Source: Paraphysomonas bandaiensis (lineage: Eukaryota > Protista > Chrysophyceae). From it: 64,000 nt of DNA. Under the pieces are notes generated by a model that saw nothing but the letters and a program-made list of their open reading frames with translations, did no database searches and was not told the origin of the DNA. Positions 1 through 32,218 of the stretch are shown piece by piece. Within the stretch, counting starts at the first letter, position 1. Every line of letters begins with the position of its first letter. The stretch lies in assembly GCA_965644295.1 (NCBI GenBank), contig CBFFRP010000066.1, positions 124,001 to 188,000 of the forward strand. Reading direction: 5' to 3'. Both the position numbers and the translations under genes were made by a program.

Positions 1-309
1 GATGTAGCCGCTACAAGGCTGCTGCAGAGAAGGTTCAGGAACTGGTTCAGAAGCACTTTTCTATTGAGGTTCACCTGCTGGCAGTAACTGTGTATGTGAT
101 GGTACCGTACCTGTGATCCTGTGCTTCTAAGCCACTCGTTCATACATACATCAACCCTCTTGCTATCATCTCAGCTCAGTAATCACAGAGTGCGAAGGGT
201 ACAGTTGGGATTGCATTATATACCACTATATTGTCATCTTCTACACTGGCCCGTAAAGTATGAACACCCCCGTATACATGCACAGCAGTATATCCATATG
301 ATTCTAGTA

Positions 310-445
310 CGAAGTGTGGTATTACAAACCCCTGTTTTTATTGGATTGTGTAATTGGAAACCTCTGTTTTTAAAATTGAGCGAAGTGTGTTTCTGGAAAC
401 CCCTGTTTTTATTTGATTGTGTTATTGGAAATCCCTGTTTTTGTA
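310..445. repeat. Two imperfect ~70-bp tandem units containing four GGAAACCCCTGTTTTT-like motifs (second copy at ~4565-4700)
   Basis: cgaagtgtg...aaacccctgtttttatt.gattgtgt.attggaaa...ctgttttt occurs twice in tandem. Confidence 0.7.
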
Positions 446-615
446 GTATCACCCATACAAACAACAGCGATTTTGAGATTTCTCGAAACTACGAGAACTT
501 GGTGAAATTTCAGTTTTTCAATGCTAATAACAACACAACATTTCGTACAACGCTGTGTTACTGAAGTGTTTAGTGGCTGTAGCTGTGCAGATGAGGAGAG
601 AAGGCTTCGAAGATA

Positions 616-653
616 TGAAGTGAAGTGAAGTGAAGTGAAGTGAAGTGAGAAGT
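616..653. repeat. (TGAAG)n pentanucleotide microsatellite (copy at ~4874-4911)
   Basis: tgaagtgaagtgaag... read directly. Confidence 0.9.
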
Positions 654-869
654 ACAAAACTTCACTTTTATACAGTCAGAATACCATAAAATACGTAGAA
701 GGTTAAGATACTAGTGGAATCAGAACATGCAGAACCCCCAACACACTCCTCGAGCTCAGCTGACCAGCCTGATGTGGATAGTCCGCCATTCCATCACTGC
801 ACTCGGAGACCTTCATAGTCAGCCATACTGTGGAACCATACGCAGACTTGAACTTGTCGAAACCATAAT

Positions 870-3065
870 ATGGATATGCATGTGATCATCATTGCAATCC
901 ATGCACTAACCACAGCAGCCCAGACCTACTTGGGTTCATACGATACACCTCATCTTGCCATTGATGTGCATGTGGTGAATGAGGTGGCGTATGTAGCTGA
1001 TGGTTCTTCAGGATTGCTGATTATCGATGTGAGTGATTCCACCAGCCCATCGCTACTGGGCTCTTACGATACACCTGGTTATGCCGAGGGGGTGTATGTA
1101 CTGAATGAGGTGGCGTATGTTGCTGATTGGTATTCAGGATTGCAGATTATTAATGTGAGTGATTCGACCAGTCCATCTCTACTGGGTTCATACGATACAC
1201 CTGGTATTGCCAATGCGGTGTATGTGTTGAATGACGTGGCGTATGTTACTGATGGTGCTTCAGGATTGCAGATTATTAACGTGAGTGACTCGACCAGCCC
1301 ATTGCAACTGGGTTCTTACGATACACCTGGTAGTGCCCGTGGGGCGTATGTGGTGAATGACATGGCGTATGTTGCCGATTATACCGCAGGATTGCTGATT
1401 ATTGACGTGAGTGATTCGACCAACCCATTGCTCTTGGGTTCTTACGATACACCTCATACTGCCTTTGGGGTGTATGTGGTGAATGACGTGGCGTATGTTG
1501 CTGATGCATATTCAGGATTGCTGATTATTGACGTGAGTGATTCGACCAGTCCGTTGTTATTGGGTTCTTACGATACACCTTATGAGGCCTTCTGGGTATA
1601 TGTGGTGAATGAGGTGGCGTATGTTGCTGATGCATCTTCAGGATTGCAGATTATTGACGTGAGTGATTCGACCAGCCCATATCTATTGGGTTCATACGAT
1701 ACACCTCATTTTGCATTTGTGGTGCATGTGGTGAATGAGGTGGCGTATGTTGCTGATGGTTATTCAGGATTGCAGATTATTGCCGTGAGCGATTCAATTC
1801 CGTCATCGATTCCCACTTTGCAGCCAACCACGTCAATCCCCTCTGCAATTCCTTCAGAGATTCCTACTTTGCAGCCAACCACGTCAATCCCCTCTGCAAT
1901 TCCTTCAGAGATTCCTACTTTGCAGCCGACCACGTCGATTCCTTCATCGGTTCCCACTTTGCAGCCAACCACGTCAATTCCCTCATTGTACCCCACTTTG
2001 CAGCCAACAACGTCAATTCCCTCATGGGTTCCTTCATCGATTCCTACTGTTCAGCCGACCACGTCATTCCCCTCTTCATTTCCCTCATCTATTCCTACTT
2101 TGCAGCCAACCACGTCAATCCCCTCTTCAATTCCGTCATCGATTCCCACTTTGCAGCCAACCACGTCAATCCCCTCTGCAATTCCTTCAGAGATTCCTAC
2201 TTTGCAGCCGACCACGTCAATCCCCTCTTCAATTCCTTCATCGATTCCTACTCTTCAGCCGACCACGTCAATCCCCTCTTCATTTCCCTCATCGATTCCT
2301 ACTTTGCAGCCGACCACCTCAATTCCCTCATCGATTCCCACTTTGCAACCGACCACCTCAATCCCCTCTTCAATTCCCTCATCGATTCCCACTTTGCAGC
2401 CTGCCACATCACTTCCCTCATCGAGTCCCACAACGCAGCCTACCACTTCTCTTCCTACTTCGCAGCCTACGCTATTTGGCTACAGGGCGTCACCGTATTC
2501 TACCCCTCATCCCTATGAAAATTTGGCTACCTATAGCCACAGTTTCTACGAACCTAGCGCTGCTAAAATAAAAGTGCATTTCTCCATGTTCGAAACAGAA
2601 GAGGACTATGATGTGGTTGAACTGATTAACTCTGATGGTGTGATTCAGCAGAGTTATTCAGGGGCTTTGGGACAATTTGATAGCACATGGGTTAGTGGAA
2701 ATCAGGTGAATATTAGACTGGCTACTGATTCCACATATACTTCATATGGATTTGATGTAACTGGCTTTACCTTTTCTAAAGAGCCGTTAAGTAGTGAGTC
2801 AGGCGATGGCGGTGGGAGTGGTAGTAGTCGTGGCAATTACTGGTGGTTGTATCTACTGATTTTAATACTTCCAGTTATTGTTGCTTTTGTTTGTTTCTTT
2901 TATTGGTGCAACAACTACCGTAAGAGGCGTACTGCTGATCACCCTCCTTCCTATACTGATGTTCAAATGGTGCCAACAAACACTTCCGTTCCTACCAAAA
3001 GTCGACCTGGGCATGACACCTGGGAAGTGGATTTGACGAGCATTTCATATGAAAATAACATATAG
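870..3065 (+). CDS. Type I membrane protein: signal peptide, 7 LVIVD-type beta-propeller repeats, PT/PS mucin-like stalk, CUB-like domain, TM helix, short cytosolic tail
   Basis: 731-aa intronless ORF; 42-aa repeat [40 protein letters not shown]; [11 protein letters not shown] repeats; STPHPYEN...IKVHFSMFETEEDYDVV CUB signature; WWLYLLILILPVIVAFVCFF TM followed by RKRR. Confidence 0.9.
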   Translation: MDMHVIIIAIHALTTAAQTYLGSYDTPHLAIDVHVVNEVAYVADGSSGLLIIDVSDSTSPSLLGSYDTPGYAEGVYVLNEVAYVADWYSGLQIINVSDSTSPSLLGSYDTPGIANAVYVLNDVAYVTDGASGLQIINVSDSTSPLQLGSYDTPGSARGAYVVNDMAYVADYTAGLLIIDVSDSTNPLLLGSYDTPHTAFGVYVVNDVAYVADAYSGLLIIDVSDSTSPLLLGSYDTPYEAFWVYVVNEVAYVADASSGLQIIDVSDSTSPYLLGSYDTPHFAFVVHVVNEVAYVADGYSGLQIIAVSDSIPSSIPTLQPTTSIPSAIPSEIPTLQPTTSIPSAIPSEIPTLQPTTSIPSSVPTLQPTTSIPSLYPTLQPTTSIPSWVPSSIPTVQPTTSFPSSFPSSIPTLQPTTSIPSSIPSSIPTLQPTTSIPSAIPSEIPTLQPTTSIPSSIPSSIPTLQPTTSIPSSFPSSIPTLQPTTSIPSSIPTLQPTTSIPSSIPSSIPTLQPATSLPSSSPTTQPTTSLPTSQPTLFGYRASPYSTPHPYENLATYSHSFYEPSAAKIKVHFSMFETEEDYDVVELINSDGVIQQSYSGALGQFDSTWVSGNQVNIRLATDSTYTSYGFDVTGFTFSKEPLSSESGDGGGSGSSRGNYWWLYLLILILPVIVAFVCFFYWCNNYRKRRTADHPPSYTDVQMVPTNTSVPTKSRPGHDTWEVDLTSISYENNI

Positions 3066-4255
3066 TAGAGTTGTCATAAGAATTCTTCTGAGCCATAAGC
3101 ATCAGTTTAAATGCTTGTTAGTAACAGGTTCATAAAAAGGAAAAGACATTATGAGAGTACTACTGACTGATACTCATGCTGTACACAATTATTGCTTACT
3201 GTAATATTATAATTACCATCACGATTGTGAATTGTGACCCCTTGACCACTTACTCTGTTGGTGACGAAGTTGGAAAATTTTAATTTTGGCCCTTTTTGGC
3301 CCTCGGCCCGCATTTGGCCCTCTACTACAACTAACAATAATAACAATAATTCTTAATTAAAAACACACATAACACACACTACAACTACAAGCAACAATAA
3401 CGCACAAAGCAAAGGGCAGTATTACGCACAAAGCAAAGGGTCAAATTTAGCAAGAGTTATTAATATCTTAAGCAAGAGCAACTTTTTTACCAAAACATTT
3501 TTCGGGGCTGGGGGCTCCACACGCTTCGAGTCTACGAGCCGGCGTCCACTGCCCCCAGGCCCCCGCCCCTAAACAACGCCGGGGCGCCTGAGCCCTGCCG
3601 GCGGCAATACAGCATGTCTCAATAGCATGAATCCTTACATCACAAGACATAACTGACGGATACGCAACCACCAAAAAACCTCATAGGACAAACCGGTGGA
3701 CGTATGACTCCGACGTTTCAGCAAGTCTCACCATAGGCAACACATCTGAAAGATCTTCTGTCTCTGATAATAGCACGTATGATTTCGTATCCTCGTCACT
3801 GAGATCAATCACACCACATCATTCAACTTCAACGCTAAGTCGCGAGCACCCTGGCTGTCAGGAAGAATGGAGTGGGTTAGGGTTAGCGGATGGAATATTT
3901 GACCAGTCCACCAATCAATATATTGTACAATGTATTGCAATACAATATATTATTCCCTATCCCTGGGGTAAACTATTTCCTATACACACTGACTGCATCT
4001 TGTGTATCAGAGTCATGCAGCAGAAGTTGTCTCGGTGTAAGATCGGAACTTCTTATATGCCACATACGGCAGAGTAACTGCTGCGTAAGTGTTCTGGATT
4101 GAGAGTAATGCTCTTAGGGTGCAATGCGCAGGTAATCAACACTGGCCAACGGTGGTGCCCCATCCAGAGCTAGACTTCCAGCGACTCGCCAGGTATGGTA
4201 GATATGAAACATCTACGTGTATATTACACCCCCCTATATGGTGACATGAAAGGTG

Positions 4256-7200
4256 GATGTAGCCGCTACAAGGCTGCTGCAGAGAAGGTTCAGGAACTGG
4301 TTCAGAAGCACTTTTCTATTGAGGTTCACCTGCTGGCAGTAACTGTGTATGTGATGGTACCGTACCTGTGATCCTGTGCTTCTAAGCCACTCGTTCATAC
4401 ATACATCAACCCTCTTGCTATCATCTCAGCTCAGTAATCACAGAGTGCGAAGGGTACAGTTGGGATTGCATTATATACCACTATATTGTCATCTTCTACA
4501 CTGGCCCGTAAAGTATGAACACCCCCGTATACATGCACAGCAGTATATCCATATGATTCTAGTACGAAGTGTGGTATTACAAACCCCTGTTTTTATTGGA
4601 TTGTGTAATTGGAAACCTCTGTTTTTAAAATTGAGCGAAGTGTGTTTCTGGAAACCCCTGTTTTTATTTGATTGTGTTATTGGAAATCCCTGTTTTTGTA
4701 GTATCACCCATACAAACAACAGCGATTTTGAGATTTCTCGAAACTACGAGAACTTGGTGAAATTTCAGTTTTTCAATGCTAATAACAACACAACATTTCG
4801 TACAACGCTGTGTATGTACTGAAGTGTTTAGTGGCTGTAGCTGTGCAGATGGGGAGAGAAGGCTTCGAAGATATGAAGTGAAGTGAAGTGAAGTGAAGTG
4901 AAGTGAGAAGTACAAAACTTCACTTTTTATACAGTCAGAATACCATAAAATACGTAGAAGGTTAAGATACTAGTGGAATCAGAACATGCAGAACCCCCAA
5001 CACACTCCTCGAGCTCAGCTGACCAGCCTGATGTGGATAGTCCGCCATTCCATCACTGCACTCGGAGACCTTCATAGTCAGTCATACTGTGGAACCATAC
5101 GCAGACTTGAACTTGTCGAAACCATAATATGGATATGCATGTGATCATCATTGCAATCCATGCACTAACCACAGCAGCCCAGACCTACTTGGGTTCATAC
5201 GATACACCTCATCTTGCCATTGATGTGCATGTGGTGAATGAGGTGGCGTATGTAGCTGATGGTTCTTCAGGATTGCTGATTATCGATGTGAGTGATTCCA
5301 CCAGCCCATCGCTACTGGGCTCTTACGATACACCTGGTTATGCCGAGGGGGTGTATGTACTGAATGAGGTGGCGTATGTTGCTGATTGGTATTCAGGATT
5401 GCAGATTATTAATGTGAGTGATTCGACCAGTCCATCTCTACTGGGTTCATACGATACACCTGGTATTGCCAATGCGGTGTATGTGTTGAATGACGTGGCG
5501 TATGTTACTGATGGTGCTTCAGGATTGCAGATTATTAACGTGAGTGACTCGACCAGCCCATTGCAACTGGGTTCTTACGATACACCTGGTAGTGCCCGTG
5601 GGGCGTATGTGGTGAATGACATGGCGTATGTTGCCGATTATACCGCAGGATTGCTGATTATTGACGTGAGTGATTCGACCAACCCATTGCTCTTGGGTTC
5701 ATACGATACACCTCATCTTGCCATTGATGTGCATGTGGTGAATGAGGTGGCGTATGTTGCTGATGGTTCTTCAGGATTGCTGATTATTGACGTGAGTGAT
5801 TCCACCAGCCCATCGCTATTGGGATATCACGATACACCTAGTAGTGCCCGTGGGGTGTACGTGGTGAATGAGGTGGCGTATGTTGCTGATGGTGCTTCAG
5901 GATTGCTGATATTTCAAGTGAGTGATTCGACCAGCCCATCGCTATTGGGATATCACGATACACCTCATATTGCCCGTGGGGTGTATGTGGTGAATGAGGT
6001 GGCGTATGTTGCTGACGGTTATTCAGGATTGCAGATTATTGACGTGAGTGATTCGACCAGCCCATTGCTACTGAGTTCTTACGATACACCTGATGATGCC
6101 CGTGGGGTGTATGTGGTGAATGAGGTAGCGTATGTTGCTGATGGTGCTTCAGGATTGCAGATTATTGACGTGAGTGATTCGACCAGCCCATTGCTACTGG
6201 GTACATACGATACACCTCATTATGCCCGTGGGGTGCATGTGGTGAATGAGGTGGCGTATGTTGCTGATGCAAATTCAGGATTGCAGATTATTGACGTGAG
6301 TGATTCGACCAGCCCATTGCTATTGGGTTCTTACGATACACCTGATGATGCCTTCTGGGTGTATGTGGTGAATGAGGTGGCGTATGTTGCTGATGGTTAT
6401 TCAGGATTGCTGATTATTGATGTGAGTGATTCGACCAGCCCATTGCTATTGGGTTCATACGTTACACCTGATTTTGCACTTGAGGTGTATGTGGTGAATG
6501 AGGTGGCGTATGTTGCTGATGCAAATTCAGGATTGCAGATTATTGACGTGAGTGATTCAAATCCCTCATTGATTCCCACTTTGCAGCCGACCACCTCATA
6601 TCCCTCATGGATTCCCACTTTGCAGCCGACCACGTCAATCCCCTCTTCAATTCCTTCATCGATTCCCACTTTGCATCCGACCACGTCATTCCCATCTTCA
6701 AGTCCATCATCGATTCCCTCGTCTATTCCCACTGTGCATCCGACCACGTCATTCCCCTCCTCAATTCCTTCAACGAATCCCACTTTGCAGCCAACCACGT
6801 CAATTCCCTCATCGATTCCCACTTTGCAGCCGACCACGTCAATTCCCTCCTCCGTTCCCACTTCGCAGCCGACTACGTCAATCCCCTCATTGATTCCCAC
6901 TTTGCAGCCAACCACGTCAATTCCCTCATCGCTTCCGACTCTTCATCCGACCACGTCATTCCCCTCCTCGGTTCCCACTTCGCATCCGACCACGTCAATT
7001 CCCTCATCGATTCCCACTTTGCAGCCGACCACGTCAATTCCCTCCTCCGTTCCCACTTCGCAGCCGACTACGTCAATCCCCTCATTGATTCCCACTTTGC
7101 AGCCAACCACGTCAATTCCCTCATCGCTTCCGACTCTTCATCCGACCACGTCATTCCCCTCCTCGGTTCCCACTTCGCAGCCAACCACGTCAATTCCCTC

Positions 7201-8290
7201 ATCGATTCCCACTTTGCAGCCGACCACGTCAATTCCCTCCTCCGTTCCCACTTCGCAGCCGACTACGTCAATCCCCTCCTCGGTTCCCACTTCGCAGCCG
7301 ACTACGTCAATCCCCTCATTGATTCCCACTTTGCATCCGACCACGTCAATTCCCTCATCGGTTCCCACTGTTCATCCGACCACGTCATTCCCCTCCTCAA
7401 TTCCCTCATCGATTCCCACTTTGCATCCGACAACGTCAATTCCCTCCTCGGTTCCCACTTCGCAGCCGACCACTTCTGTTCCTACTTCACAGCCTACGCT
7501 TTTTGGCTACAGGGCGTCATCGTATTCTACCCCCCATCCCTATGAAAATTTGGCTACCTATAGCCACAGTTTCTACGAACCTAGCGCTGCTAAAATAAAA
7601 GTGCATTTCTCCATGTTTGAAACAGAAGAGGACTATGATGTGGTTGAACTGATTAACTCTGATGGTGTGATCCAGGAGAGTTATTCAGGGGCTTTGGGAC
7701 AATTCGATAGCACATGGGTTAGTGGAAATCAGGTGAATATTAGACTGGCTACTGATTCCACATATACCTCATATGGATTTGATGTAACTGGCTTTACCTT
7801 TTCTAAAGAGCCGTTAAGTAGTGAGTCAGGCGATGGCGGTGGGAGTGGTAGTAGTCGTGGCAATTACTGGTGGTTGTATCTACTGATCTTGATACTTCCA
7901 ATTATCGTTGCTTTTGTTTGTTTCGGTAATTGGTGCAACAACTACCGTAAGAGGCGTACTGCTGATCATCATCCTTCCTATACTGATGTTCAAATGGTGC
8001 CAACTAACACTTCCGTTCCTACCAAAAGTCGACCTGGGCATGACACCTGGGAAGTGGATTTGACGAGCTTTTCATATGAAAATAACATATAGTAGAGTTG
8101 CCATAAGAATTCTTCTGGAGCCATAAGCATCAGTTTAAATGCTTGTTAGTAACAGGTTCATAAAAAGGAATAAACATTATGAGAGTACTACTGACTGATA
8201 CTCATGCTGTACACAATTATTGCTTGTTGTAATATTATAATTACCATCACGACTGTGACCCCTTGACCACTTACTCTGTTGATGACGAAT
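4256..8290. repeat. Segmental duplication, copy B
   Basis: gatgtagccgctacaagg restarts at 4256; similarity to copy A ends near ctgttgatgacgaa at ~8290. Confidence 0.95.
5129..8092 (+). CDS. Paralogous LVIVD-repeat membrane protein with 11 repeats, longer PT stalk, CUB-like domain, TM and tail
   Basis: 987-aa intronless ORF; N-terminus and repeats 1-4 identical to 870..3065; C-terminal region differs by only a few residues. Confidence 0.9.
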   Translation: MDMHVIIIAIHALTTAAQTYLGSYDTPHLAIDVHVVNEVAYVADGSSGLLIIDVSDSTSPSLLGSYDTPGYAEGVYVLNEVAYVADWYSGLQIINVSDSTSPSLLGSYDTPGIANAVYVLNDVAYVTDGASGLQIINVSDSTSPLQLGSYDTPGSARGAYVVNDMAYVADYTAGLLIIDVSDSTNPLLLGSYDTPHLAIDVHVVNEVAYVADGSSGLLIIDVSDSTSPSLLGYHDTPSSARGVYVVNEVAYVADGASGLLIFQVSDSTSPSLLGYHDTPHIARGVYVVNEVAYVADGYSGLQIIDVSDSTSPLLLSSYDTPDDARGVYVVNEVAYVADGASGLQIIDVSDSTSPLLLGTYDTPHYARGVHVVNEVAYVADANSGLQIIDVSDSTSPLLLGSYDTPDDAFWVYVVNEVAYVADGYSGLLIIDVSDSTSPLLLGSYVTPDFALEVYVVNEVAYVADANSGLQIIDVSDSNPSLIPTLQPTTSYPSWIPTLQPTTSIPSSIPSSIPTLHPTTSFPSSSPSSIPSSIPTVHPTTSFPSSIPSTNPTLQPTTSIPSSIPTLQPTTSIPSSVPTSQPTTSIPSLIPTLQPTTSIPSSLPTLHPTTSFPSSVPTSHPTTSIPSSIPTLQPTTSIPSSVPTSQPTTSIPSLIPTLQPTTSIPSSLPTLHPTTSFPSSVPTSQPTTSIPSSIPTLQPTTSIPSSVPTSQPTTSIPSSVPTSQPTTSIPSLIPTLHPTTSIPSSVPTVHPTTSFPSSIPSSIPTLHPTTSIPSSVPTSQPTTSVPTSQPTLFGYRASSYSTPHPYENLATYSHSFYEPSAAKIKVHFSMFETEEDYDVVELINSDGVIQESYSGALGQFDSTWVSGNQVNIRLATDSTYTSYGFDVTGFTFSKEPLSSESGDGGGSGSSRGNYWWLYLLILILPIIVAFVCFGNWCNNYRKRRTADHHPSYTDVQMVPTNTSVPTKSRPGHDTWEVDLTSFSYENNI

Positions 8291-10828
8291 GTTGAGTTCT
8301 GCTATATGATGTGATATATATCGTGCAATTGAAGTGAGTTAATAGTGTGAATCATTGCTCTGATTCTTCTCAGAGCTACTAAATGAAACAGGCTAGAGTC
8401 ATGAACCTCCATTTTAGGTTCTCCCTCCATGGTAATAATAGATAACTAACAATGAATATGACTACAACTACAATAATACTATCTACAAGCAACTTCCAGA
8501 GTACAGAAATTGCATCTTATTATCAATAATCAATATATACATATGATTCCCAGGCCAGAGGAAGGCCTACAGGAATGACCTTCATCCATATACATTACTA
8601 ATAGCTCAGCCTGATGACAACTGATTCATCATCTATGCATAAGGGAAGATACATTCAGTATTCTCATTGTATACGTACTTCCAAGTACAGTTCAATAAAC
8701 AATAAGTACCTCTAATGAAATACATAAGTACAACTGTATTACTGGATAATCTGGCAATACACGTCTATCAGCGTGGATATCAAACCCGGAATTCTCCAGT
8801 AAACTTCTCCAGCCTTAAGCATTAATATATATATATAATAAGAACATATACATATATATCATCAATCATAATATCTTCATCATTGAACTTCATTATTGGT
8901 AATCCTGTCTTTCTTTGTCTTTTGAATAGATATTCAAGTATCAATGATAAGCATGAATTGTCATAGTCATAATATATCATATATCCTACTGTGAAATATG
9001 GCAATAATAATAATATTCAACCTATGTTGCACATATAGTATATGTACAAACTTAAGCATATACAATAGAGAGCTCATATAGCATAAAATAACCAGATGGC
9101 TGGTTATTACACCCCCCCCTCCAGCAGTCGCATACGCCAGTATGCGGAACGAAGTTCACTGCGTACCTAGTATGTAGTTTCCTACTAGTTGGATAAATCC
9201 GGACTTCGTACTCGTCAAATTTAGCATCATAAAACACATCACATTGCAGCTGCACACCTTCATATGGACCTTCAAATTTCGCCTGTAGTATGGCCTTAAT
9301 TTGGTATGGTTCTTCATTGTGTATTAGTTATAATAACTCATTACAAGCATCCAATTTGATTGAGCAGGGTTGATATCATATCATACGACATTGCGCCACA
9401 AGTGACATTCGTGCGTAATATATTGCATCTGCAAAGTATCAACTCATCCAATATGACCTTAATATTCATCAAAGCATACTTATATTAATCAAACCATTAT
9501 AACAGTGTCATAAACAGTCATTGGGGTTAAATTTACTGCAAAACAGGTCAACTACACCCGTGGTTGTAGGGGTTTGGGACATGGATGCCCATACAGCAAA
9601 GATCTTTGAAAGAACGTAATTCCAACAAATAAAAGACGAAACTCAGTATGAAGATTTCATATCACTCAAACATTAAGAATGATCACGATTCCTTGAATTG
9701 GAAGGCATATGGGACCATTAAGTGCAGCAAGGAAGATGCAATTAGGGACATATCCTCCTATAATGACCTGTGCATATTTCTTTACCGTTTATTAATGAAA
9801 CCAGAATAAGAACTCATGATCTCATCTTTGCAATCACAACATTGTTATCAGCAACTGGTCTCTGCTATGTACCTCACAGTGAGTTCAGGAGCTCTCCATA
9901 AACTGTGAATTTTGATGCAGGATAACAATTGCAATCTTACAATCAAATTTCCACCAAAGCTTGTGGAAGTTGGACTCCACACCTCCAGAATAGCATGTTC
10001 TATTGGTAACCCAGTGTGTTAATGTGGTATGTCTCAATGTTGGAGCATATGATTGACATATGCATGGAGGGGACCTTAACCTACAGCAGTATAAAACTGT
10101 GTGGAATACGGTGTCTGGAATGGGAAATAAACTGAAAAAAACTGCCTAGAGTTTTTTCCGCCACTACGTAGAAGTGCTTACAGCCGTTCTTAAACAAAAA
10201 AAAACTACCAAAAAACCTCGGAAAAATCCTACCTTATACAAAACCTACCCATTCTGTGTACAATATGCCGATTATTTTCTTAAAAAATGTGTAGTTTTGT
10301 TACATTTTGGAGTGAAAAACCTAGGAACTTTTTAGTTTAGGTTGTGTAATTCATTTTACATAGTTCTTCTAGTTTCGCTAAACCCAAAAACTCACACACA
10401 CTACAATAGAGAATAATTTTTTCTCGTGTAAACTCCCAAAAATCTGCCTTTAGTTTTACATAGATCGGTGGGTTTTCTCGTTTTTGTCTTTTTTTGTCTC
10501 ACTATAATTTGTGGTCATTTTCTGTCCACTAGTAAGAGCATTTTTCGGGTAGTTTTTTGAAAATTGTTACAAAATTGCATACTGTGGAGATATTACCCTA
10601 GTTTTAGAGAGAAAAAAACGAAATATCCTGGTTTTTATACCTTTATAGCCGAAAACGTTTTAGAGGACACACTCTGAGCAATCATCAAGAAGGAGATGCA
10701 CTCACCCTACATGCATGTATCTAAACACTTGATCATATTTCTCCATATCTCATAGACTTTCATACTCAGTCATTATATTATGGTACTACTCTAACTTGAA
10801 TCTGTCTATTGGGGCTGGAAACCATAAT

Positions 10829-12916
10829 ATGCATATGTATGTTATCATCATTGCAATCCATGCACTAACCACAGCAGCCCAGAGCTACTTGGGTTCTTAC
10901 GGTACTTCTGGTGATGCCTATGGGGTGTATGTGGTGAATGAGGTGGCGTATGTTGCTGATGGTGCTTCAGGACTACAGATTATTAACGTGAGTGATTCGA
11001 CCAGCCCATCGCTATTGGGTTCATACGATACACCTCATTTTGCATTTGTGGTGCATGTGGTGAATGAGGTGGCGTATGTAGCCGATCGTTCTTCAGGATT
11101 GCAGATTATTGACGTGAGTGATTCGACCAACCCATTCTTATTGGGTTCATACGATACTCCTGGTGATGCCTATGGGGTGGTTGTTGTGAATGAGGTGACC
11201 TATGTTGCTGATAGTTCTTCAGGATTGCAGATTATTGACGTGAGTGATTCGACCAGCCCATTCCTATTGGGTTCTTACGATACACCTGGTGCTTCCTATG
11301 GGGTATATGTGGTGAATGAGGTGGCGTATGTTGCCGATGGTGCTTCAGGATTGCAGATTATTGACGTGAGTGACTCGACCAACCCATTGCTACTGGGTTC
11401 TTTCGATACACCTGGTACTGCCTATGTGGTGTATGTTGTGAATGAGGTGGCGTATGTTGCCGATTATGCTGCAGGATTGCAGATTATTGACGTGAGTGAT
11501 TCAACCAACCCATTGCTATTAGGTTCTTACGATACACCGGATCTAGCCCGTGAGGTGTATGTGGTGAATGAGGTGGCGTATGTTGCTGATGGTTATTCAG
11601 GATTGCAGATATTGACGTGAGTGATTCGACCAGTCCCTTGTTAATGGGTTCTTACGATACGCCTCATTATTCACGTGGGGTGTATGTGGTGAATGAGGTG
11701 GCGTATGTTGCTGATGGTTATTCAGGATTGCAGATTATAGACGTGAGTGATTCCAGCAACCCATTTCTATTAGGTTCTTACAATACACCTGGTGCTTCCT
11801 ATGGGGTGCATGTGGTGAATGAGGTGGCGTATGTTGCCGATTATACTGCAGGATTGCAGATTATTGACGTGAGTGATTCGACCAGCCCATATCTATTGGG
11901 TTCTTACGGTACATCTGATTATGCCTATGCGGTGGATGTTGTGAATGAGGTGGCGTATGTTGCCGATCGATATTCAGGATTGCAGATTTTAAACGTTTTG
12001 TCGAATCCTACAGCACAGCCGACAACGGCAATCCCCTCTTCAATTCCCTCATCGATTCCCACAACTTCAATCCCCTCTTCAATTCCCACATCAATACCCA
12101 CTCTTCAGCCAACCACGTCAATCCCCTCTTCAATTCCCTCATCGAGTCCCACAACTTCAATTCCCTCAGCCAGTTCCACAACTCAACCAACCACTTGTGT
12201 TCCTACTTCGCAGTCTACGCTATTTGGCTACAGGGCGTCATCGTATTCTACCCCCCATCCCAGAGTCATTTCAGCCTATTGTCCCAATGGGTGCAGTGGT
12301 CACGGTTCTTGTGGAACCTATGGTAAGTGTACATGCTATGCCAGAATAGATGGTGAGCCTGCATGGACCTTTGCTGACTGTTCTGGTCGCACATGCCCCA
12401 AGTCTACAGCTTGGATTGGCACTGTCGAGGGGGCAAATGATGCCCACCCCGTGGCGGAATGCTCTAATAAGGGTATTTGTGATCGATCCACTGGTGAGTG
12501 CGTTTGTTTTGAGAACTACGAGGGTATTGCCTGCGAGAGAACCGTTTGTCCTAACTCTTGCAGCAATGCTGGTGTTTGTTTCACTCAGCTTCAACTGGCT
12601 GCTGAGGCTGGAATGCTTTACACCACTCCTTGGGATGCTGAGAAGCATGTCGGATGCATTTGCGATCTCGGCCGTCGTGGACCGGATTGTTCACTTGGTA
12701 AGTACTGTATATTATATGGTTGTGATTTTATAGTATATTTCTAATTTATTGTGTGCAGTGGAGTGCCCATCTGGAGCAGATATTCTGAAGGGATATGGTA
12801 ACGAAGCTGGCCGTGATTGCTCTGGTCGTGGTCTCTGCGACTATACGGATGGCACATGTACTTGCTTCCATGGTTACTATGGTACCAGATGTGAATATCA
12901 GACCATTCTTGGTTAA
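10829..12916 (+). pseudogene. Third LVIVD paralog (9 repeats + short PT stalk) fused to a Sig/Ocm mastigoneme-like EGF-repeat gene; 1-nt deletion frameshift at ~11610 (pseudogene or sequencing error)
   Basis: ATG at 10829 is homologous to the other copies; cagatattgac here versus cagattattgac in sister repeats; CPNGCSGHG...[15 protein letters not shown] motifs; GT-AG intron 12698-12758 then [52 protein letters not shown] ending at 12916. Confidence 0.8.
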
Positions 12917-13019
12917 TCGATATCATTTTCATATTCATTGGATTTATACATTTATACGACATTTACATTTATACCGTGTTCATTAGTTTGGGTGTCTTCT
13001 AACTACTACTAGTAGTAGT

Positions 13020-13200
13020 AGTGAATGTCTTAGCAGTCGGTGTTGAACAGCCAGAACTAATTTAGCATAACTAACTAGTAACTAGTGCGTAACTCTGATA
13101 TCCTACTATTTAACTCTACGAAAGCTGCACACACAGGCAGTCCATTACCACGGATGCCCTTGAAGTGGCCCGTTCCCGGATGCCTGTTGATTTGTAGAAG
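13020..13200. repeat. Dispersed repeat, diverged copy of ~35945-36210
   Basis: Shared blocks gtgaatgtctta, aactaactagt, tttaac.ctac.aaagctgca and cccggatgcctgtt.atttgt. Confidence 0.7.
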
Positions 13201-13799
13201 AGCCATGTTTACCGTTCCATCACCTATAACAAAAATTACGCGGAGCTTCTCGTGACCATGCATGTCCCATTATCTCATTTTAAGCCCCCTCCTCCCCTAG
13301 AATGCGCGGGGTTTCTCGAACATGGGCTATGCAAGGATATTGGAGATCTAACTAGAGCTTGCTTGGCGCAGACACGCAAAGAATACGCTGGGATTTAATA
13401 GCAATCTATACGATACGTAATCAACAATGGCACTTAACTAGGACAGACTCTCGGAATGGGGCAGTATAGTTGCAACGAAAACGCAGCTAAATTCCAGTCT
13501 AGCTTGCTCTTTTACATTTGTACTTTTTTCTACACTTTATTCGTGTAATAAGGTGTTAATTCAATTATTGAATGCACAGTATATTGATGATTGTTATTCG
13601 TATAAAGACACGAATCAATAATAGCGATTAGACCCTCTCAATATTCGGTCTACATTCGTAGCTCAAGCGATTGGTCTCAGTGACCAATTATACGTCCGCT
13701 CTGACTACAATGACATCAGCAAATAGTGATTTATTATTCTGGACTGCTACTTTTTAACTACCTCATCTCCATTAAGTGGATTACAAACGTAATATCTAA

Positions 13800-20730: not shown

Positions 20731-22185
20731 CTATACAGCAGAGCTGCATATCCTTCCAAAACATGGACATGGAGAGTCCTGTGAACGAAGCCACTGCAGA
20801 ATATCCAAGTGTCCACCCTCTGCAGCAACTTTGCAAGTCAGCAAATTCCATGGACATGGAGGGTCCTGTGAACGTAGCCACTGCAGAACATCCAAGTGCC
20901 CACCCTCTACAGCAGAACAGCAAGTATATTCAATCCATGGACATGGAGGGTCCTGTAAACGAACCCACTGCAGAATATCCAAGTGTCCACACCTTGCAGC
21001 AAAGCTGCAAGTCCGCGAATCCCATGGACATGGAGGGTCCTGTGAACGTAGCCACTGCAGAACATCCAAGTGCCCACCCTGTACAGCAGAACAGCAAGTA
21101 TATTCAATCCATGGACATGGAGGGTCCAGTGAACGAAGCCACTGCAGTACCTCCAAATGTCCACCTCTAGCAGCAAAGCTGCAAATCCGTGAACCCCATT
21201 CAAATGGAGGGTCCTGTAAACGTAGCCACTGTAGAACATCCAAGTGCCCACCCCTAGCAGCAGCTTCGCAAGTAACTACATTCCAAGGACATGGAGGGTC
21301 CTGGGAACGAACCCACTGCAGTACCTCCAAGTGCCCACCCTCTGCAGCAGCATTACATGTTTCTTCATTCCATGGACATGGAGGGTCCTGTGAACGTAGC
21401 CACTGCAGAACATCCAAGTGCCCACCCTGTACAGCAGAACAGCAAGTATATTCAATCCATGGACATGGAGGGTCCAGTGAACGAAGCCACTGCAGTACCT
21501 CCAAATGTCCACCTCTAGCAGCAAAGCTGCAAATCCGTGAACCCCATTCAAATGGAGGGTCCTGTAAACGTAGCCACTGTAGAACATCCAAGTGCCCACC
21601 CCTAGCAGCAGCTTCGCAAGTAACTACATTCCAAGGACATGGAGGGTCCTGGGAACGAACCCACTGCAGTACCTCCAAGTGCCCACCCTCTGCAGCAGCA
21701 TTACATGTTTCTTCATTCCATGGACATGGAGGGTCCTGTGAACGAAGCCACTGCAGGATATCTAAGTGCCCACGCTCTGCAGCAGCTGCGCAAGTTTCTT
21801 CATTCCATGGACCCAGATGGTCTTGTGCATGAAGGCTCATGATGTGTATCATCTGCTGTAGTCTGCCGTATAGTGCACATGTATTCATTAGTTTGATGTG
21901 TGGACAGCCCATAGACAGAGCCCATGAGACCATTGAGTTGGTCATACAGTAGTGAGATGCATGCGACTGTACTCTCCTTATATCAACCATTTCGTAACAT
22001 ATCATACAAGTCTGAAGAAGGCCAGTACAATAGTGAGGTACAAGTGACTGTACTTTCATTACAGCAGCCATATTGTAAAATCTCCTACAAGTCATGATGA
22101 CTGGAAGGACTGCTGTGTGTGGGATCATAGAGATGATGATACGTAGAGCATCATCTTCGCGACCATCTATAAAGAAATTATTCAT
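20731..22185 (-). CDS. Ankyrin-like 29-aa repeat protein (W...TC..AA..GHL..LQWLR..DPPCP type) with possible degenerate F-box-like N-terminus
   Basis: 484-aa intronless ORF; about 12-13 repeats of 87 bp; last repeat truncated by a stop. Confidence 0.85.
   Translation of the reverse strand: MNNFFIDGREDDALRIIISMIPHTAVLPVIMTCRRFYNMAAVMKVQSLVPHYCTGLLQTCMICYEMVDIRRVQSHASHYCMTNSMVSWALSMGCPHIKLMNTCALYGRLQQMIHIMSLHAQDHLGPWNEETCAAAAERGHLDILQWLRSQDPPCPWNEETCNAAAEGGHLEVLQWVRSQDPPCPWNVVTCEAAARGGHLDVLQWLRLQDPPFEWGSRICSFAARGGHLEVLQWLRSLDPPCPWIEYTCCSAVQGGHLDVLQWLRSQDPPCPWNEETCNAAAEGGHLEVLQWVRSQDPPCPWNVVTCEAAARGGHLDVLQWLRLQDPPFEWGSRICSFAARGGHLEVLQWLRSLDPPCPWIEYTCCSAVQGGHLDVLQWLRSQDPPCPWDSRTCSFAARCGHLDILQWVRLQDPPCPWIEYTCCSAVEGGHLDVLQWLRSQDPPCPWNLLTCKVAAEGGHLDILQWLRSQDSPCPCFGRICSSAV
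21023..21745. repeat. 348-bp (4 x 87 bp) near-exact internal tandem duplication within the ankyrin-like gene
   Basis: Block starting catggacatggagggtcctgtgaacgtagcc at 21023 recurs at 21371. Confidence 0.9.
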
Positions 22186-22336
22186 AGTTTATATGAGACT
22201 GATAGAGTGATAATACGCTGCAACAAATGAGATCTACATACATATACACATACATATATGTACATATACATATCTAGATATGAGACAGACCAAAGAAGAG
22301 AAATTTCCTCCTCAATTCGGAAAATCCGTCACGTAC

Positions 22337-22823
22337 GTACATACATACATACATACATACATACATACATACATACATACATACATACATACATACATAC
22401 ATACATACATACATACATACATACATACATACATACATACATACATACATACATACATACTACATACCTACATACCTACATACCTACATACCTACATACC
22501 TACATACCTACATACATACATACATACATACATACATACATACATACATACATACATACATACATACATACATACATACATACATACATACATACATACA
22601 TACATACATACATACATACATACATACATACATACATACATACATACATACATACATACATACATACATACATACATACATACATACATACATACATACA
22701 TACATACATACATACATACCATACATACATACATACATACATACATACATACATACATACATACATACATACATACATACATACATACATACATACATAC
22801 ATACATACATACATACCATACAT
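22337..22823. repeat. (ACAT)n microsatellite of ~490 bp with an internal (ACATACCT)n variant block
   Basis: Read directly; the HTYI/MYVC ORFs are artefacts of it. Confidence 0.98.
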
Positions 22824-22866
22824 AAATGTCGATGTAACTCATCCACATATCACTCATCTAGCCACC

Positions 22867-23451
22867 ATGTCCGACGTCCAACCACTAACCGTATCTAACG
22901 AACGAGAAGTCAATGCAGCTGATTTATCCATTGATCAGTTAGCTACTTTAAAACAACAACATGAAGATGAGTTGCAAGAATTACAAAATCAATTAGAGCA
23001 ACTTCATGGTGCCAAAAATCGTTATATTCATGCTAAAAATGTTCTAGAAGACATGTCATCCACACAAGATGGTGCCCCTATGTTAGTTCCTCTAACATCT
23101 TCTCTCTATGTACCTGGATATGTACGTAATCCTGAGAAGGTATTAGTGGAATTAGGTACGGGTTATTTTTGTGAGAAGAATGCACCTGAAGCCAAAGAAT
23201 TACTATCCAGAAAGGTGTGTTTGATGATGTTATGTGTGTTTATATTATGTTAATTACTCTGTTTATTTTTTAGATGACACTTGTTGACAAATCAATTGAG
23301 AGTGTAGAAAAGGTGATATGTGAAGTTATTTTTTATGAGGATAATTTCTTTTTAGGTTGGCTTGAACAAGAAGAAGACCCTCGATCAAATAGTAATGATG
23401 ATTAACTACAAAGTGACTATGGCTCGGGAGCAGCAAGGAGCAAAGAACTAG
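22867..23451 (+). CDS. PFDN5: Prefoldin subunit 5 (3 exons; introns 23215-23273, 23313-23355)
   Basis: LSIDQLATLKQQHEDE...MLVPLTSSLYVPG....KVLVELGTGYFCEK motif; gccaccATG context. Confidence 0.93.
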
Positions 23452-29699: not shown

Positions 29700-32218
29700 T
29701 TACGTATCTGGAATCACATTGACTCTACGAACTATATGCTGGGGAATGTATTTCACACTCTCCCTAATCAAAGGGTAAAACCCTGATAAATATTCTTGCA
29801 TCGTCTGTATAATATTGGCGGTATCTAACGGTTTGGTTAGGGTCTTATCGAACCCATCCCACCCCACACATTCTACTTCACTTTCTAGGTTCGCGGAGAC
29901 TGCGCATACAAATTGTCGTCTACGACCACTACTATACTTCGATGCTTCGTATTCGCGCAATCTATGAATTGCCTAAAACAAAGTTAGCAACGTAAAGATT
30001 AAATTACGAGTATAATAACACGAGACGATATGAAAAGCTTACAAAAATTCGACGCACCTCAGGTCCAGACATCACAGGCATTTGAATGTCCATGAAGACA
30101 ACGTCCACAACTTCTTCTTTCATAACATCAAGTGCTTTACTTCCATTTTCAAACGTGTAGACTTCTTTAAACCCAAGATTCAACAGGGTACGCCGAAGAA
30201 GTTTCCGAATTGATTGCACATCATCAACAACGAATGCAACCAATTCTCTCTCCCGAATAGATTGCACTACATTTTCGTGTGCCTCGATAGACGAGCTAGA
30301 ATATTTTCGTTGATTAGGCAAGGGAGATGTTGAGACACTCGAAGTCATTGTACTTCTTTCATGTACAGCCCTCAGAATATCCGTGGTAGGAGACACAATA
30401 AAATCTGAAGACTGTAATCTGCTCAACTGGCTGTCACTTTTCTTATCAATTTCACCCTTGTCAGAGCCAGGAGCATCTACTGTAATTCGAAGGCCACCGG
30501 CTGTCTTAAAAGAACACTTGTCAGCACTATTCCAAGACACAGATCCCTCGGTACTATTGTCTAATTTGACTAGAGTCGGGTCAACTACGTAGGGAATTTT
30601 GAACCAGAAAATTGACCCCTTGAGCTTATTCGGTCTCACTCCACATGATCCCCCCAGCCCCTCTGCACGTATTCGTACACCGTAAAGACCGAGGCCAGTT
30701 CCAGTGTTCTGTCCTTGTTGGGCCTGAGTGTACGGGTTAAACAGAGTGTTCAAGGTCTTCTGAGTCACCCCAACACCAGTATCAATCAGCTCAAACAGAA
30801 GCATTTTGTCGTTCTGATCGCATCGGCGGCACACCACCTGTATGCTACCTTCCTCCGTATACTTGCAAGCGTTCGTAAGCAGATTTAAAATCATTTGCCA
30901 GACCCACTCTTCATCTGTTATGATATCATTGAACACCGTGTTGGCAATAGAAAACGTGATAGGTACCCGGCGGCTGTATCCCTCTATAATAACAGCAACC
31001 TTGTGCATTACTCCACACAGATTGACGGTAGATTTTCGAGGTTTAATAGAGTATCCCATCATTACCTTGTTTATATCCATCGTTTGGGAAATGGTAAGGT
31101 TCATGAGAGACACAGAGATGTGAGCCTGACTGTAAAGTTGTAGTTGGTCGTCCGTGAGGCCTGAGTCTTTCAACAGCTCCAAGACAAAGGAGAAGCTTTG
31201 AAGAGGTGTTTTGAGGTCATGAGCACAACAAGTGATATATTGCAGCTTAGCTAAATTCTCTCTCTCCTGTGTCTGGAGGCGCATATCGTATTCAGTCTTC
31301 TTCGCGTGAACATCACTCGTAATAATCATAACATCATGGGAATCGTAATTGTGCATTTGTATGGAGTGAGATGATGATCCAAAATTAGATGATTCACTGC
31401 ACACCAATGTTGACTTCATCCATCGCCAGCCATTACGTTTGCTATCCCTTATTCGAAATTCAACATTCACTGGACCGAATGCTTCGGGATCAGTATTGCA
31501 CATATAGATATTATTGGAGTTCATGTCTGCTAACCCATCTGACGCAATCGATTCAAAAAATACAGAAGCAGCAGTAATAAATGATTCTATGTCATCTGGA
31601 TGCATGACATCTGTAATCTTGCAGTGGTCAATTTGAGAGCCAAATATTCGTTTCGTTGAGGCATTCCCTCTAATCATATACAAATCTCTAGACAGAAGTG
31701 CAATACTTTCCTGGCAAGAGTCAATAATACGTAACAATCTGTTTTCCGCCTTAACTAACTCCCCATTCGCAGTGAGTTCAAGATTATTGGTGATTTTAAG
31801 AATGGCTGGAAAGAGAAAACTTGCAACAACAGCGGATAAAAATGACACAACAGCACATAAATGCATTGTGGTGTTACGAAAATAAGTCATTTTTACATCC
31901 AAATGTACGCGAAGGAAGTCAACAAAATGAGTTAACCCACACGCAAATATAAACATCGAGAATAGTAGCAATACAGTGAGACTCATAATGAGTAACATTT
32001 GATTACCAGTTGCAACATTTCGTTGAAAATATGCACTCAGCAGCTAAAATATTAAACAAGAAGTGTAAGTTATTGTGTGAAGATAGAGTATATCCACTTA
32101 CTCGTGATCGTAGAGCCAAAATTAGTATTTGTAAAGTAATCCAAAAATATGATAAGGATATTACCAAGTCATTGAGAGCTACTACTGCAAGTGCCATAAG
32201 TAGTCTCAATAAATTCAC
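29700..32218 (-). CDS. Membrane-anchored hybrid histidine kinase (TM helices, PAS, HisKA, HATPase_c, REC); 5' end uncertain; introns 32044-32101 and 29973-30057
   Basis: HPDD PAS motif; AHDLKTPL H-box; NLLTNACKYT, DTGVG and GTGLGL boxes; VVDD...VFMDIQMPVMSG|AIHRLR...TKPL receiver. Confidence 0.92.

Follow-up and report, generated by a model that had tools for sequence, protein, structure and literature searches.

Genes of the locus

The DNA analysed here, called the window throughout, is a stretch of 64,000 nucleotides from the chrysophyte Paraphysomonas bandaiensis (positions 124001-188000 of contig C66, in a genome of 62.5 Mb), and its first part carries three genes of the same strand, genes 1, 2 and 3, which encode tandem arrays of LVIVD repeats, a predicted β-propeller repeat of 42 amino acids. 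Tandem Repeats Finder places arrays of period 126 at 926-1795 (6.9 copies), 5189-6558 (10.9) and 10884-11988 (8.8), with 83-85% matches, and the translations resolve them into 7, 11 and 9 in-frame units, as had been stated in a preliminary description of this DNA. All units within the arrays lie exactly 126 bp apart, with the exception of one spacing of 125 bp in the third. The same description had read a stalk, a CUB domain and a transmembrane segment behind the repeats; these are found in genes 1 and 2, where the CUB domain lies at the Pfam threshold, while gene 3 has a short stalk and, in place of the CUB domain and transmembrane segment, a tail of the epidermal growth factor (EGF) type. 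The parts of the three genes are the following.

1-869, plus strand: upstream flank of gene 1, part of a tandem duplicon of about 4.3 kb
870-3065, plus strand: gene 1, 731 amino acids, from the open reading frame (ORF) and its translation
939-1820, plus strand: LVIVD array of gene 1, seven 126-bp units that form one closed seven-bladed propeller in an AlphaFold2 model
1788-2471, plus strand: mucin-like stalk of gene 1, with repeats of 13 and 17 amino acids rich in proline, threonine and serine (P/T/S) and tandem repeat periods of 39, 51 and 90
2511-2783, plus strand: CUB domain of gene 1, borderline in Pfam; the nearest Atlas cluster is CUB, at 0.81
2841-2897, plus strand: predicted transmembrane segment of gene 1, WWLYLLILILPVIVAFVCF, followed by basic NNYRKRR, read from the sequence
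2940-2954, plus strand: HPPSY in the tail of gene 1, a PPxY-like motif
5129-8092, plus strand: gene 2, 987 amino acids, architecture as in gene 1, with 11 LVIVD repeats at 5198-6583 and a longer stalk
7868-7924, plus strand: hydrophobic segment of gene 2, followed by basic residues, read from the sequence
10829-12696, plus strand: first exon of gene 3, with 9 LVIVD repeats, a short stalk and the start of a cysteine-rich module of the EGF/teneurin type
12697-12757, plus strand: intron of gene 3, 61 nt, GT..AG; the joint 12696>12758 is present in the polyA marine metatranscriptome contig X18, and also in X14
12758-12916, plus strand: last exon of gene 3, end of the EGF-type module, from the translation

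The product of gene 1 opens with a short N-terminal hydrophobic leader, continues through the seven repeats, the stalk and the CUB domain to the transmembrane segment, and ends in a cytoplasmic tail of about 55 amino acids; a single hydrophobic segment followed by NNYRKRR would fit a single-pass type I topology. Gene 1 has 13 copies of the 39- and 51-nt stalk repeats, and gene 2 has 23. With a Pfam cut-off of 21.4 bits for CUB (PF00431), gene 1 falls just under it (21.3) and gene 2 over it (22.7), and the customary CUB cysteines are not present in the domain. A word-indexed search with the CUB and transmembrane tail of gene 1 (residues 525-731) gave no match; an exhaustive HMMER search with this tail returned 717 relatives, five of the six scanned being firm CUB proteins (49-80 bits), and such CUB relatives were found at E values of 1e-54 to 1e-27. 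Since the relatives of the tail score firmly on CUB, the membership of the domain of genes 1 and 2 is backed by transitivity. The HPPSY motif of the tail belongs to the class bound by WW-domain ubiquitin ligases; its counterpart in gene 2 is HHPSY (7967-7981), and HPPSY is retained in a paralogue on another contig, the C149 gene. Upstream of the start codon of gene 1 lie 32-nt tandem repeats (3.8 copies, 315-442) and (TGAAG)6.6 (616-648), both of which recur upstream of gene 2, at 4570-4697 and 4874-4906. Standing 220-550 bp before the start codons of the two genes, they may be promoter elements.

Gene 3 differs in its C-terminal part, for which Pfam reports EGF_2 and EGF_Teneurin, with no CUB domain and no transmembrane segment. 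This module matches a 209-aa transcript of Paraphysomonas (MMETSP1103, taxid 36769) at 95% identity and is kept as a protein of about 209 amino acids in Ectocarpus, Chromulina, Triparma, Heterosigma and diatoms. A marine polyA metatranscriptome has contigs with the spliced tail of gene 3 as well as LVIVD-like contigs, a hint of expression. The public runs in which this DNA occurs are marine, and a near-identical fragment lies on a marine metagenome contig (study PRJEB4352). The reading frame of gene 3 is broken into two ORFs, 10796-11620 and 11617-12744, by a 1-bp deletion near 11603 (GATTATT to GATATT), which results in a stop at 11618-11620. In four public runs the contigs end within the arrays, and none of the matches listed shows an indel close to 11603.

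Between genes 2 and 3, at 8350-9200, there is a dispersed repeat of about 0.8 kb, of which the genome contains at least 40 more copies, 80-94% identical; it gave 566 first-look candidates and has a very high contig depth in other strains. Depth is high again at 12916-13300, so that gene 3 is flanked by two repeated elements. No direct or inverted repeats were detected when the surroundings of gene 3 were searched for them.

Identity of the repeat unit

The unit, which had been presented as a 126-bp cassette, proves to be the known LVIVD repeat of Pfam (PF08309): the four ORFs that make up the three genes score 163.5, 272.7, 142.4 and 70 bits, all above the gathering score of 20.2, with E values of 6e-49, 5e-83, 2.5e-42 and 1e-19. 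Among the candidates scored, the propeller part has 4111 relatives, mostly prokaryotic, and the best 120 of these 4111 are 33-61% identical to it over the propeller. The top relatives are long bacterial and archaeal proteins (from Chloroflexota and Thorarchaeota, and proteins with a type IX secretion sorting domain) with 40-61% identity over seven repeats. LVIVD repeats were first described in surface proteins of bacteria and archaea (Adindla et al. 2004, PMC2447325). In the literature using the term, no paper on eukaryotic LVIVD proteins was found, the papers on the repeat being concerned with prokaryotes or with repeat modelling.

Predicted propeller and its variable loops

For structure prediction, the seven repeats of gene 1 were aligned with their paralogues and with 34 prokaryotic segments. 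The AlphaFold2 model of 930-1820 has a predicted local distance difference (pLDDT) score of 95.6, a predicted template modelling score (pTM) of 0.92 and 28 strands, arranged in seven four-stranded blades. Foldseek matches this prediction to seven-bladed propellers, among them 5hrm (E 1.5e-11, TMq 0.79) and the WD40 domains of β-TrCP (template modelling scores of 0.78-0.81). Numbering the unit from the tyrosine of YDTP as position 0, the strands and loops fall as follows.

Strand 1, positions 6-12; strand 2, positions 15-20; strand 3, positions 24-29; strand 4, position 37 to position 0
Loop from strand 4 to strand 1, positions 1-5: variable at 4 and 5, and also at 7 and 8 at the start of strand 1
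Loop from strand 1 to strand 2, positions 13-14: conserved NE turn
Loop from strand 2 to strand 3, positions 21-23: variable at 21 and 22
Loop from strand 3 to strand 4, positions 30-36: mostly conserved SDSTSP; position 35 varies

Since every second loop of an antiparallel blade stands at the same end, the two variable loops come to lie on one face and the two conserved loops on the other. In the seven-blade model, then, the variable loops share one propeller face, the arrangement that had been put forward as a structural check. The fifth variable site, position 37, begins the outer strand and lies beside the face opposite the variable loops. The 11-repeat head of gene 2 is modelled with a pLDDT of 92.3 and a pTM of 0.62, and a low-confidence break at residues 291-295 suggests that the ring is closed by seven blades, with four remaining outside it.

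Variability and probable selection at the loop codons

Shannon entropy, computed over 83 distinct units of 12 genes, is highest at position 5 (3.46 bits), followed by 7 (3.22), 22 (3.07), 37 (2.51), 21 (2.46) and 4 (2.10), while most framework positions stay below 1 bit. Variation is concentrated where the preliminary description had placed it, in TP-xx-A-xx and AD-xx. The forms that it listed are all present, both those of the first motif (HLAID, GYAEG, GIANA, GSARG, HTAFG, YEAFW, HFAFV, DDARG, DFALE, GDAYG, DLARE and HYSRG) and those of the second (GS, WY, GA, YT, AY, AN, RS and RY). At positions 5, 7, 21 and 22 the residues are tyrosine in 18% of cases, glycine in 14%, serine and arginine in 10% each, aspartate in 9% and tryptophan in 4%. 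Such a composition is typical of the paratopes of antibodies and synthetic binders.

The ratio of the proportions of non-synonymous and synonymous differences (pN/pS) was obtained for each gene set from pairwise Nei-Gojobori counts.

C66 cluster: 2.3 at the five most variable codons versus 0.52 at other codons
C430 gene: 9.6 at the five most variable codons versus 0.55 at other codons
C319 gene: 17.9 at the five most variable codons versus 0.20 at other codons (18-23 at variable codons)

The cleanest case in the genome is the C319 gene, in which 13 units are 98% identical in their framework and differ almost only at codons 5, 7, 21 and 22. When these four sites were chosen from the C319 gene alone, the same excess appeared in the per-codon values of the other genes. 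When changes were counted by parsimony over 70 units, on a tree built with FastTree, the four codons showed 148 that were non-synonymous and 19 that were synonymous, which corresponds to a ratio of non-synonymous to synonymous rates (ω, or dN/dS) of 2.2 (binomial P 6e-4 against the neutral expectation); the framework has an ω of 0.50, and Fisher's test of the four codons against the framework yields an odds ratio of 5.3 (P 3e-12). Their dN is 3.1 times the dS of the framework, which shares any conversion tract with the variable codons. These counting methods are approximate and involve no likelihood site model, the sequences being short and recombining, and the direction is the same in every subset. 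With the variable loops on one face and non-synonymous changes faster than synonymous ones, the variable sites would be neither scattered nor buried and their dN/dS lies above 1, contrary to the outcomes that the preliminary description had named as refuting it.

The same positions vary outside this organism. In 45 bacterial and archaeal LVIVD proteins with at least 8 recognisable repeats, the positions of highest within-protein entropy are 5, 22, 7, 21 and 37, in that order, and the consensus of the joint alignment is undefined exactly at TPGxAxG, ADxxSG and PxL. Because the same positions vary in prokaryotes, the design of a framework with variable loops is a trait of the family, inherited with the repeat. 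What is specific here is the eukaryotic architecture and the nucleotide-level evidence.

The family in the genome and the history of its arrays

The genome holds at least 94 matches to the LVIVD profile, all above the cut-off. Genes 1 to 3 are the last three of eight same-strand tandem genes at C66:101875-136744, a cluster that begins about 22 kb upstream of the window, and at least four further family genes lie on four other contigs.

C66 cluster, LVIVD repeats per gene: A 14, B 6, C 8, D 7, E 7, gene 1 7, gene 2 11, gene 3 9
C319 gene, L033:2210-5308, minus strand: 14 LVIVD repeats and a long P/T/S-rich region; no CUB or EGF motif seen
C430 gene, L035:2728-4437, minus strand: 7 LVIVD repeats, stalk and EGF tail
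C152 gene, L034:3016-4725, plus strand: 7 LVIVD repeats, stalk and EGF tail
C149 gene: 7 LVIVD repeats and a CUB-transmembrane tail

The modal number of repeats is seven, and number and order differ among copies, as the preliminary description had anticipated. Most copies have their own start, array, stalk and tail, the exceptions being gene C, which ends early, and the frameshifted gene 3. The fusion of LVIVD repeats, a stalk and the EGF-type module occurs in gene 3, C430 and C152, which makes it a subfamily and not a single case. The repeat of the P/T/S region of the C319 gene differs from that of the C66 genes.

Several of these copies retain traces of the way in which they arose. Genes E, 1 and 2 share the duplicon of about 4.3 kb at 93-99.7% identity, and the array of gene E, which lies just upstream of the window, is 100% identical to that of gene 1. 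Within gene 2, repeats 1-4 are 99-100% identical to repeats 1-4 of gene 1, and repeats 5-11 form a complete array of their own, in which repeat 5 resembles repeat 1 of gene 1 (95%), repeats 9-11 pair with repeats 5-7 of gene 1 at 90-92% and repeats 6-8 have no close counterpart in gene 1. Gene 2 thus consists of the first four repeats of gene 1 and a full seven-repeat array (11 = 4 + 7), a composition produced by out-of-register crossover. In gene A there are 7 + 7 repeats, with a few stalk residues between them. Framework identity is 0.90-0.98 within arrays versus 0.68-0.88 between arrays, the mark of concerted evolution.

Exchange of smaller segments is less evident. HFAFVVH had been taken for a whole cassette recurring as repeat 7 of gene 1 and repeat 2 of gene 3; the two are identical in their first 56 nt only, after which repeat 2 of gene 3 resembles another unit, and this identity is only suggestive. 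A GENECONV-like permutation test for tracts shared between units was not significant (a maximum of 53 polymorphic sites, where the permuted data gave 47.6 on average and 57 at the 95th percentile), and micro-conversion between units is accordingly not claimed. No orphan cassettes were seen in the cluster. On this sequence evidence, the family is to be regarded as the outcome of germline birth-and-death with unequal crossover and not as a cassette system.

Interpretation and alternative explanations

These genes probably constitute a germline multigene family of cell-surface recognition or adhesion propellers, in which selection keeps the binding face diverse while the scaffold is homogenised. 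Family membership, the predicted fold, the loop topology, the excess of non-synonymous change and the recombinant structure of the arrays are the observations on which this reading draws. In the mechanism proposed, an LVIVD propeller with seven blades as its basic module would be displayed on a mucin-like stalk, anchored in genes 1 and 2 by the CUB domain and a single transmembrane helix that leads into a short cytoplasmic tail, and in gene 3 and two genes elsewhere by fusion to the conserved stramenopile EGF-type module. The family would grow by tandem duplication of the unit of about 4.3 kb and change by out-of-register crossover within the repeat arrays and by homogenisation of the repeat framework within each array, while selection would maintain differences at four or five loop residues of each blade, both among the blades of a propeller and among genes. 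Since all the varying loop residues stand on one face and are kept different, that face is most likely the one that binds a ligand, and the proteins would be receptors of differing specificities.

Several points weigh against this reading. The claim of a single face is an argument from strand and loop topology, with no measured distances. The variable sites were first picked by their amino-acid variability, which inflates pN, and the replication across genes and the comparison with framework dS lessen this bias without removing it; the parsimony counts, in turn, rest on a single tree for short, recombining units. The same positions vary across prokaryotic LVIVD proteins, and the pattern need not be special to this organism. 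Gene 3 is frameshifted in this assembly, the arrays of 11 and 9 repeats may not fold into one closed ring, to judge from the models, and some copies may be decaying. The N-terminal leader is short, and the binding function is one that we infer, as are surface display and the nature of the ligand.

The alternative that survives best, although it appears unlikely, is an ordinary structural or adhesive repeat family, in which the loops vary because they are unconstrained and recombination keeps the framework uniform, with no repertoire involved. The arrays are clearly homogenised, and the agreement of the most variable positions with those of the 45 bacterial and archaeal proteins and of the joint alignment is what would be expected of the exposed loops of any propeller. 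However, neutral sites cannot outpace the adjoining synonymous sites of the same conversion tracts, and here dN is about three times framework dS, with ω at 2.2-18. Moreover, in genes E and 1 the likeness of variable codons within one propeller (0.45) is no higher than that between genes (0.50).

It is still less probable that part of the diversity is an artefact of assembly (collapsed, expanded or mis-joined repeats) or comes from pseudogenes. The complete identity of the arrays of genes E and 1, the four repeats that gene 2 shares almost unchanged, the deletion in gene 3, the four blades left outside the ring in the 11-repeat model and the breaks of short-read contigs of other runs inside the arrays are all in keeping with it, and gene 2 and the frameshifted gene 3 may be recent recombinants of doubtful function, or assembly errors. 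Against this, the stalks of genes E, 1 and 2 are of unequal length and their flanks are not the same (93-99.7% identity), and four other contigs carry independent loci with a like pattern, which restricts this explanation to single copies and leaves the family-wide result untouched.

Programmed diversification like that of lamprey variable lymphocyte receptors (VLRs), with cassettes copied or shuffled from donor to expressed genes, somatically or at a high rate, is very improbable: units of the same length do occur in many neighbouring genes, repeat numbers vary among copies, and the 56 nt common to repeat 7 of gene 1 and repeat 2 of gene 3 include a variable loop, but the copies are genes with their own start, stalk and tail instead of truncated donor cassettes, the shared-tract test was not significant, no recombination signals or dedicated enzymes were seen nearby, and the differences in order, which the preliminary description had ascribed to VLR-like shuffling, have simple explanations in germline duplication and out-of-register crossover.

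Comparison with known systems

The prokaryotic LVIVD proteins share with the present family the 42-aa unit and its motifs (YDTPGxAxGV...AYVADxxSGLxIIDVSDPxxP), the tandem arrays, a presumed extracellular location, a predicted propeller and the variable positions, with 50-60% identity over seven repeats. The differences lie in the eukaryotic host, the spliceosomal introns and the tandem gene cluster, and in an architecture that is either of the type I membrane kind (mucin stalk, CUB domain and transmembrane segment) or a fusion with the stramenopile EGF module. In addition, the prokaryotic proteins examined have about 8-13 or more repeats, whereas a single seven-blade module is the rule here.

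The closest solved structure is the phosphotriesterase of Sphingobium sp. TCM1 (haloalkylphosphorus hydrolase, 5hrm), a seven-bladed propeller with weak LVIVD-like similarity (E 0.011). In contrast to the present proteins, it is an enzyme of 494 amino acids with long insertions, and the identity is only 15%; nothing here suggests a catalytic site, and the blades differ at the candidate face. An enzymatic reading by analogy with 5hrm was rejected, as the candidate face is not constant, either among blades or among genes.

Lamprey VLRs and other hypervariable receptors of the leucine-rich repeat (LRR) type resemble the family in combining a conserved framework with a few variable, solvent-exposed positions rich in tyrosine, serine, glycine, aspartate, arginine and tryptophan, and in presumed display on a stalk. 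They differ from it in that the scaffold here is a propeller and not a solenoid, and in that the copies are germline genes, with no incomplete donor cassettes and no sign of somatic assembly; the arrangement that marks VLRs, an incomplete germline gene accompanied by partial donor cassettes, was not found in the cluster.

Finally, the EGF/teneurin-type tail of gene 3, C430 and C152 is a candidate point of likeness to the Sig/Ocm mastigoneme proteins, to which the 209-aa family may belong. The 209-aa EGF-type protein normally stands alone, and here it bears an LVIVD propeller and a stalk at its N-terminus.

Other features of the window

Beyond the propeller genes, an ankyrin-repeat protein (20731-22185, minus strand) and a prefoldin-subunit gene (22258-23253, plus strand) form a divergent pair that looks like ordinary eukaryotic housekeeping context. 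A hybrid histidine kinase with HisKA, HATPase_c and receiver domains is encoded at 30004-31998 on the minus strand, and its N-terminus resembles the N-terminal domain of the ethylene receptor ETR1. At 41601-63998, also on the minus strand, an ORF of at least 7465 codons runs off the end of the window; its Pfam domains are DUF3638, DUF3645, SPRY, LRR and ankyrin repeats, with a polycystin-type cation channel domain at the C-terminal end. The introns and the ankyrin, prefoldin and polycystin-type genes identify the window as eukaryotic.

Implications for the organism and the repeat family

Paraphysomonas-like flagellates are bacterivores. This habit, together with the background on Sig proteins in flagellar hairs and gametes, would by analogy make prey capture and mate recognition both plausible. 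Sig proteins are located on the flagellar hairs of stramenopiles, and the rapid evolution of Sig1 has been taken to suggest gamete recognition (PMC3879662). A more far-reaching scenario, to be taken as tentative and rather doubtful, is that a phagotrophic chrysophyte took an LVIVD propeller of the prokaryotic type, which it may have obtained from bacteria, and made of it a diversified repertoire for the recognition of prey, mates or viruses, carried on the plasma membrane and, through the EGF-module fusion, on the flagellar hairs, with the PPxY-like tail possibly coupling binding to uptake and with a specificity set by blade-by-blade selection.

To our knowledge, LVIVD repeats, abundant as they are in bacterial and archaeal surface proteins, have no established function. 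Near-identical frameworks (up to 98% within an array) that differ at a few loop codons on one face would point to the functional surface of the LVIVD family as a whole. The genes described here add a eukaryotic form to a known repeat family and bear a clear signal of diversifying selection, and they are not a new kind of system. The way in which heterotrophic nanoflagellates recognise the objects that they touch is poorly understood, and membrane-anchored propellers, possibly present on flagellar hairs as well, offer a testable candidate for it.

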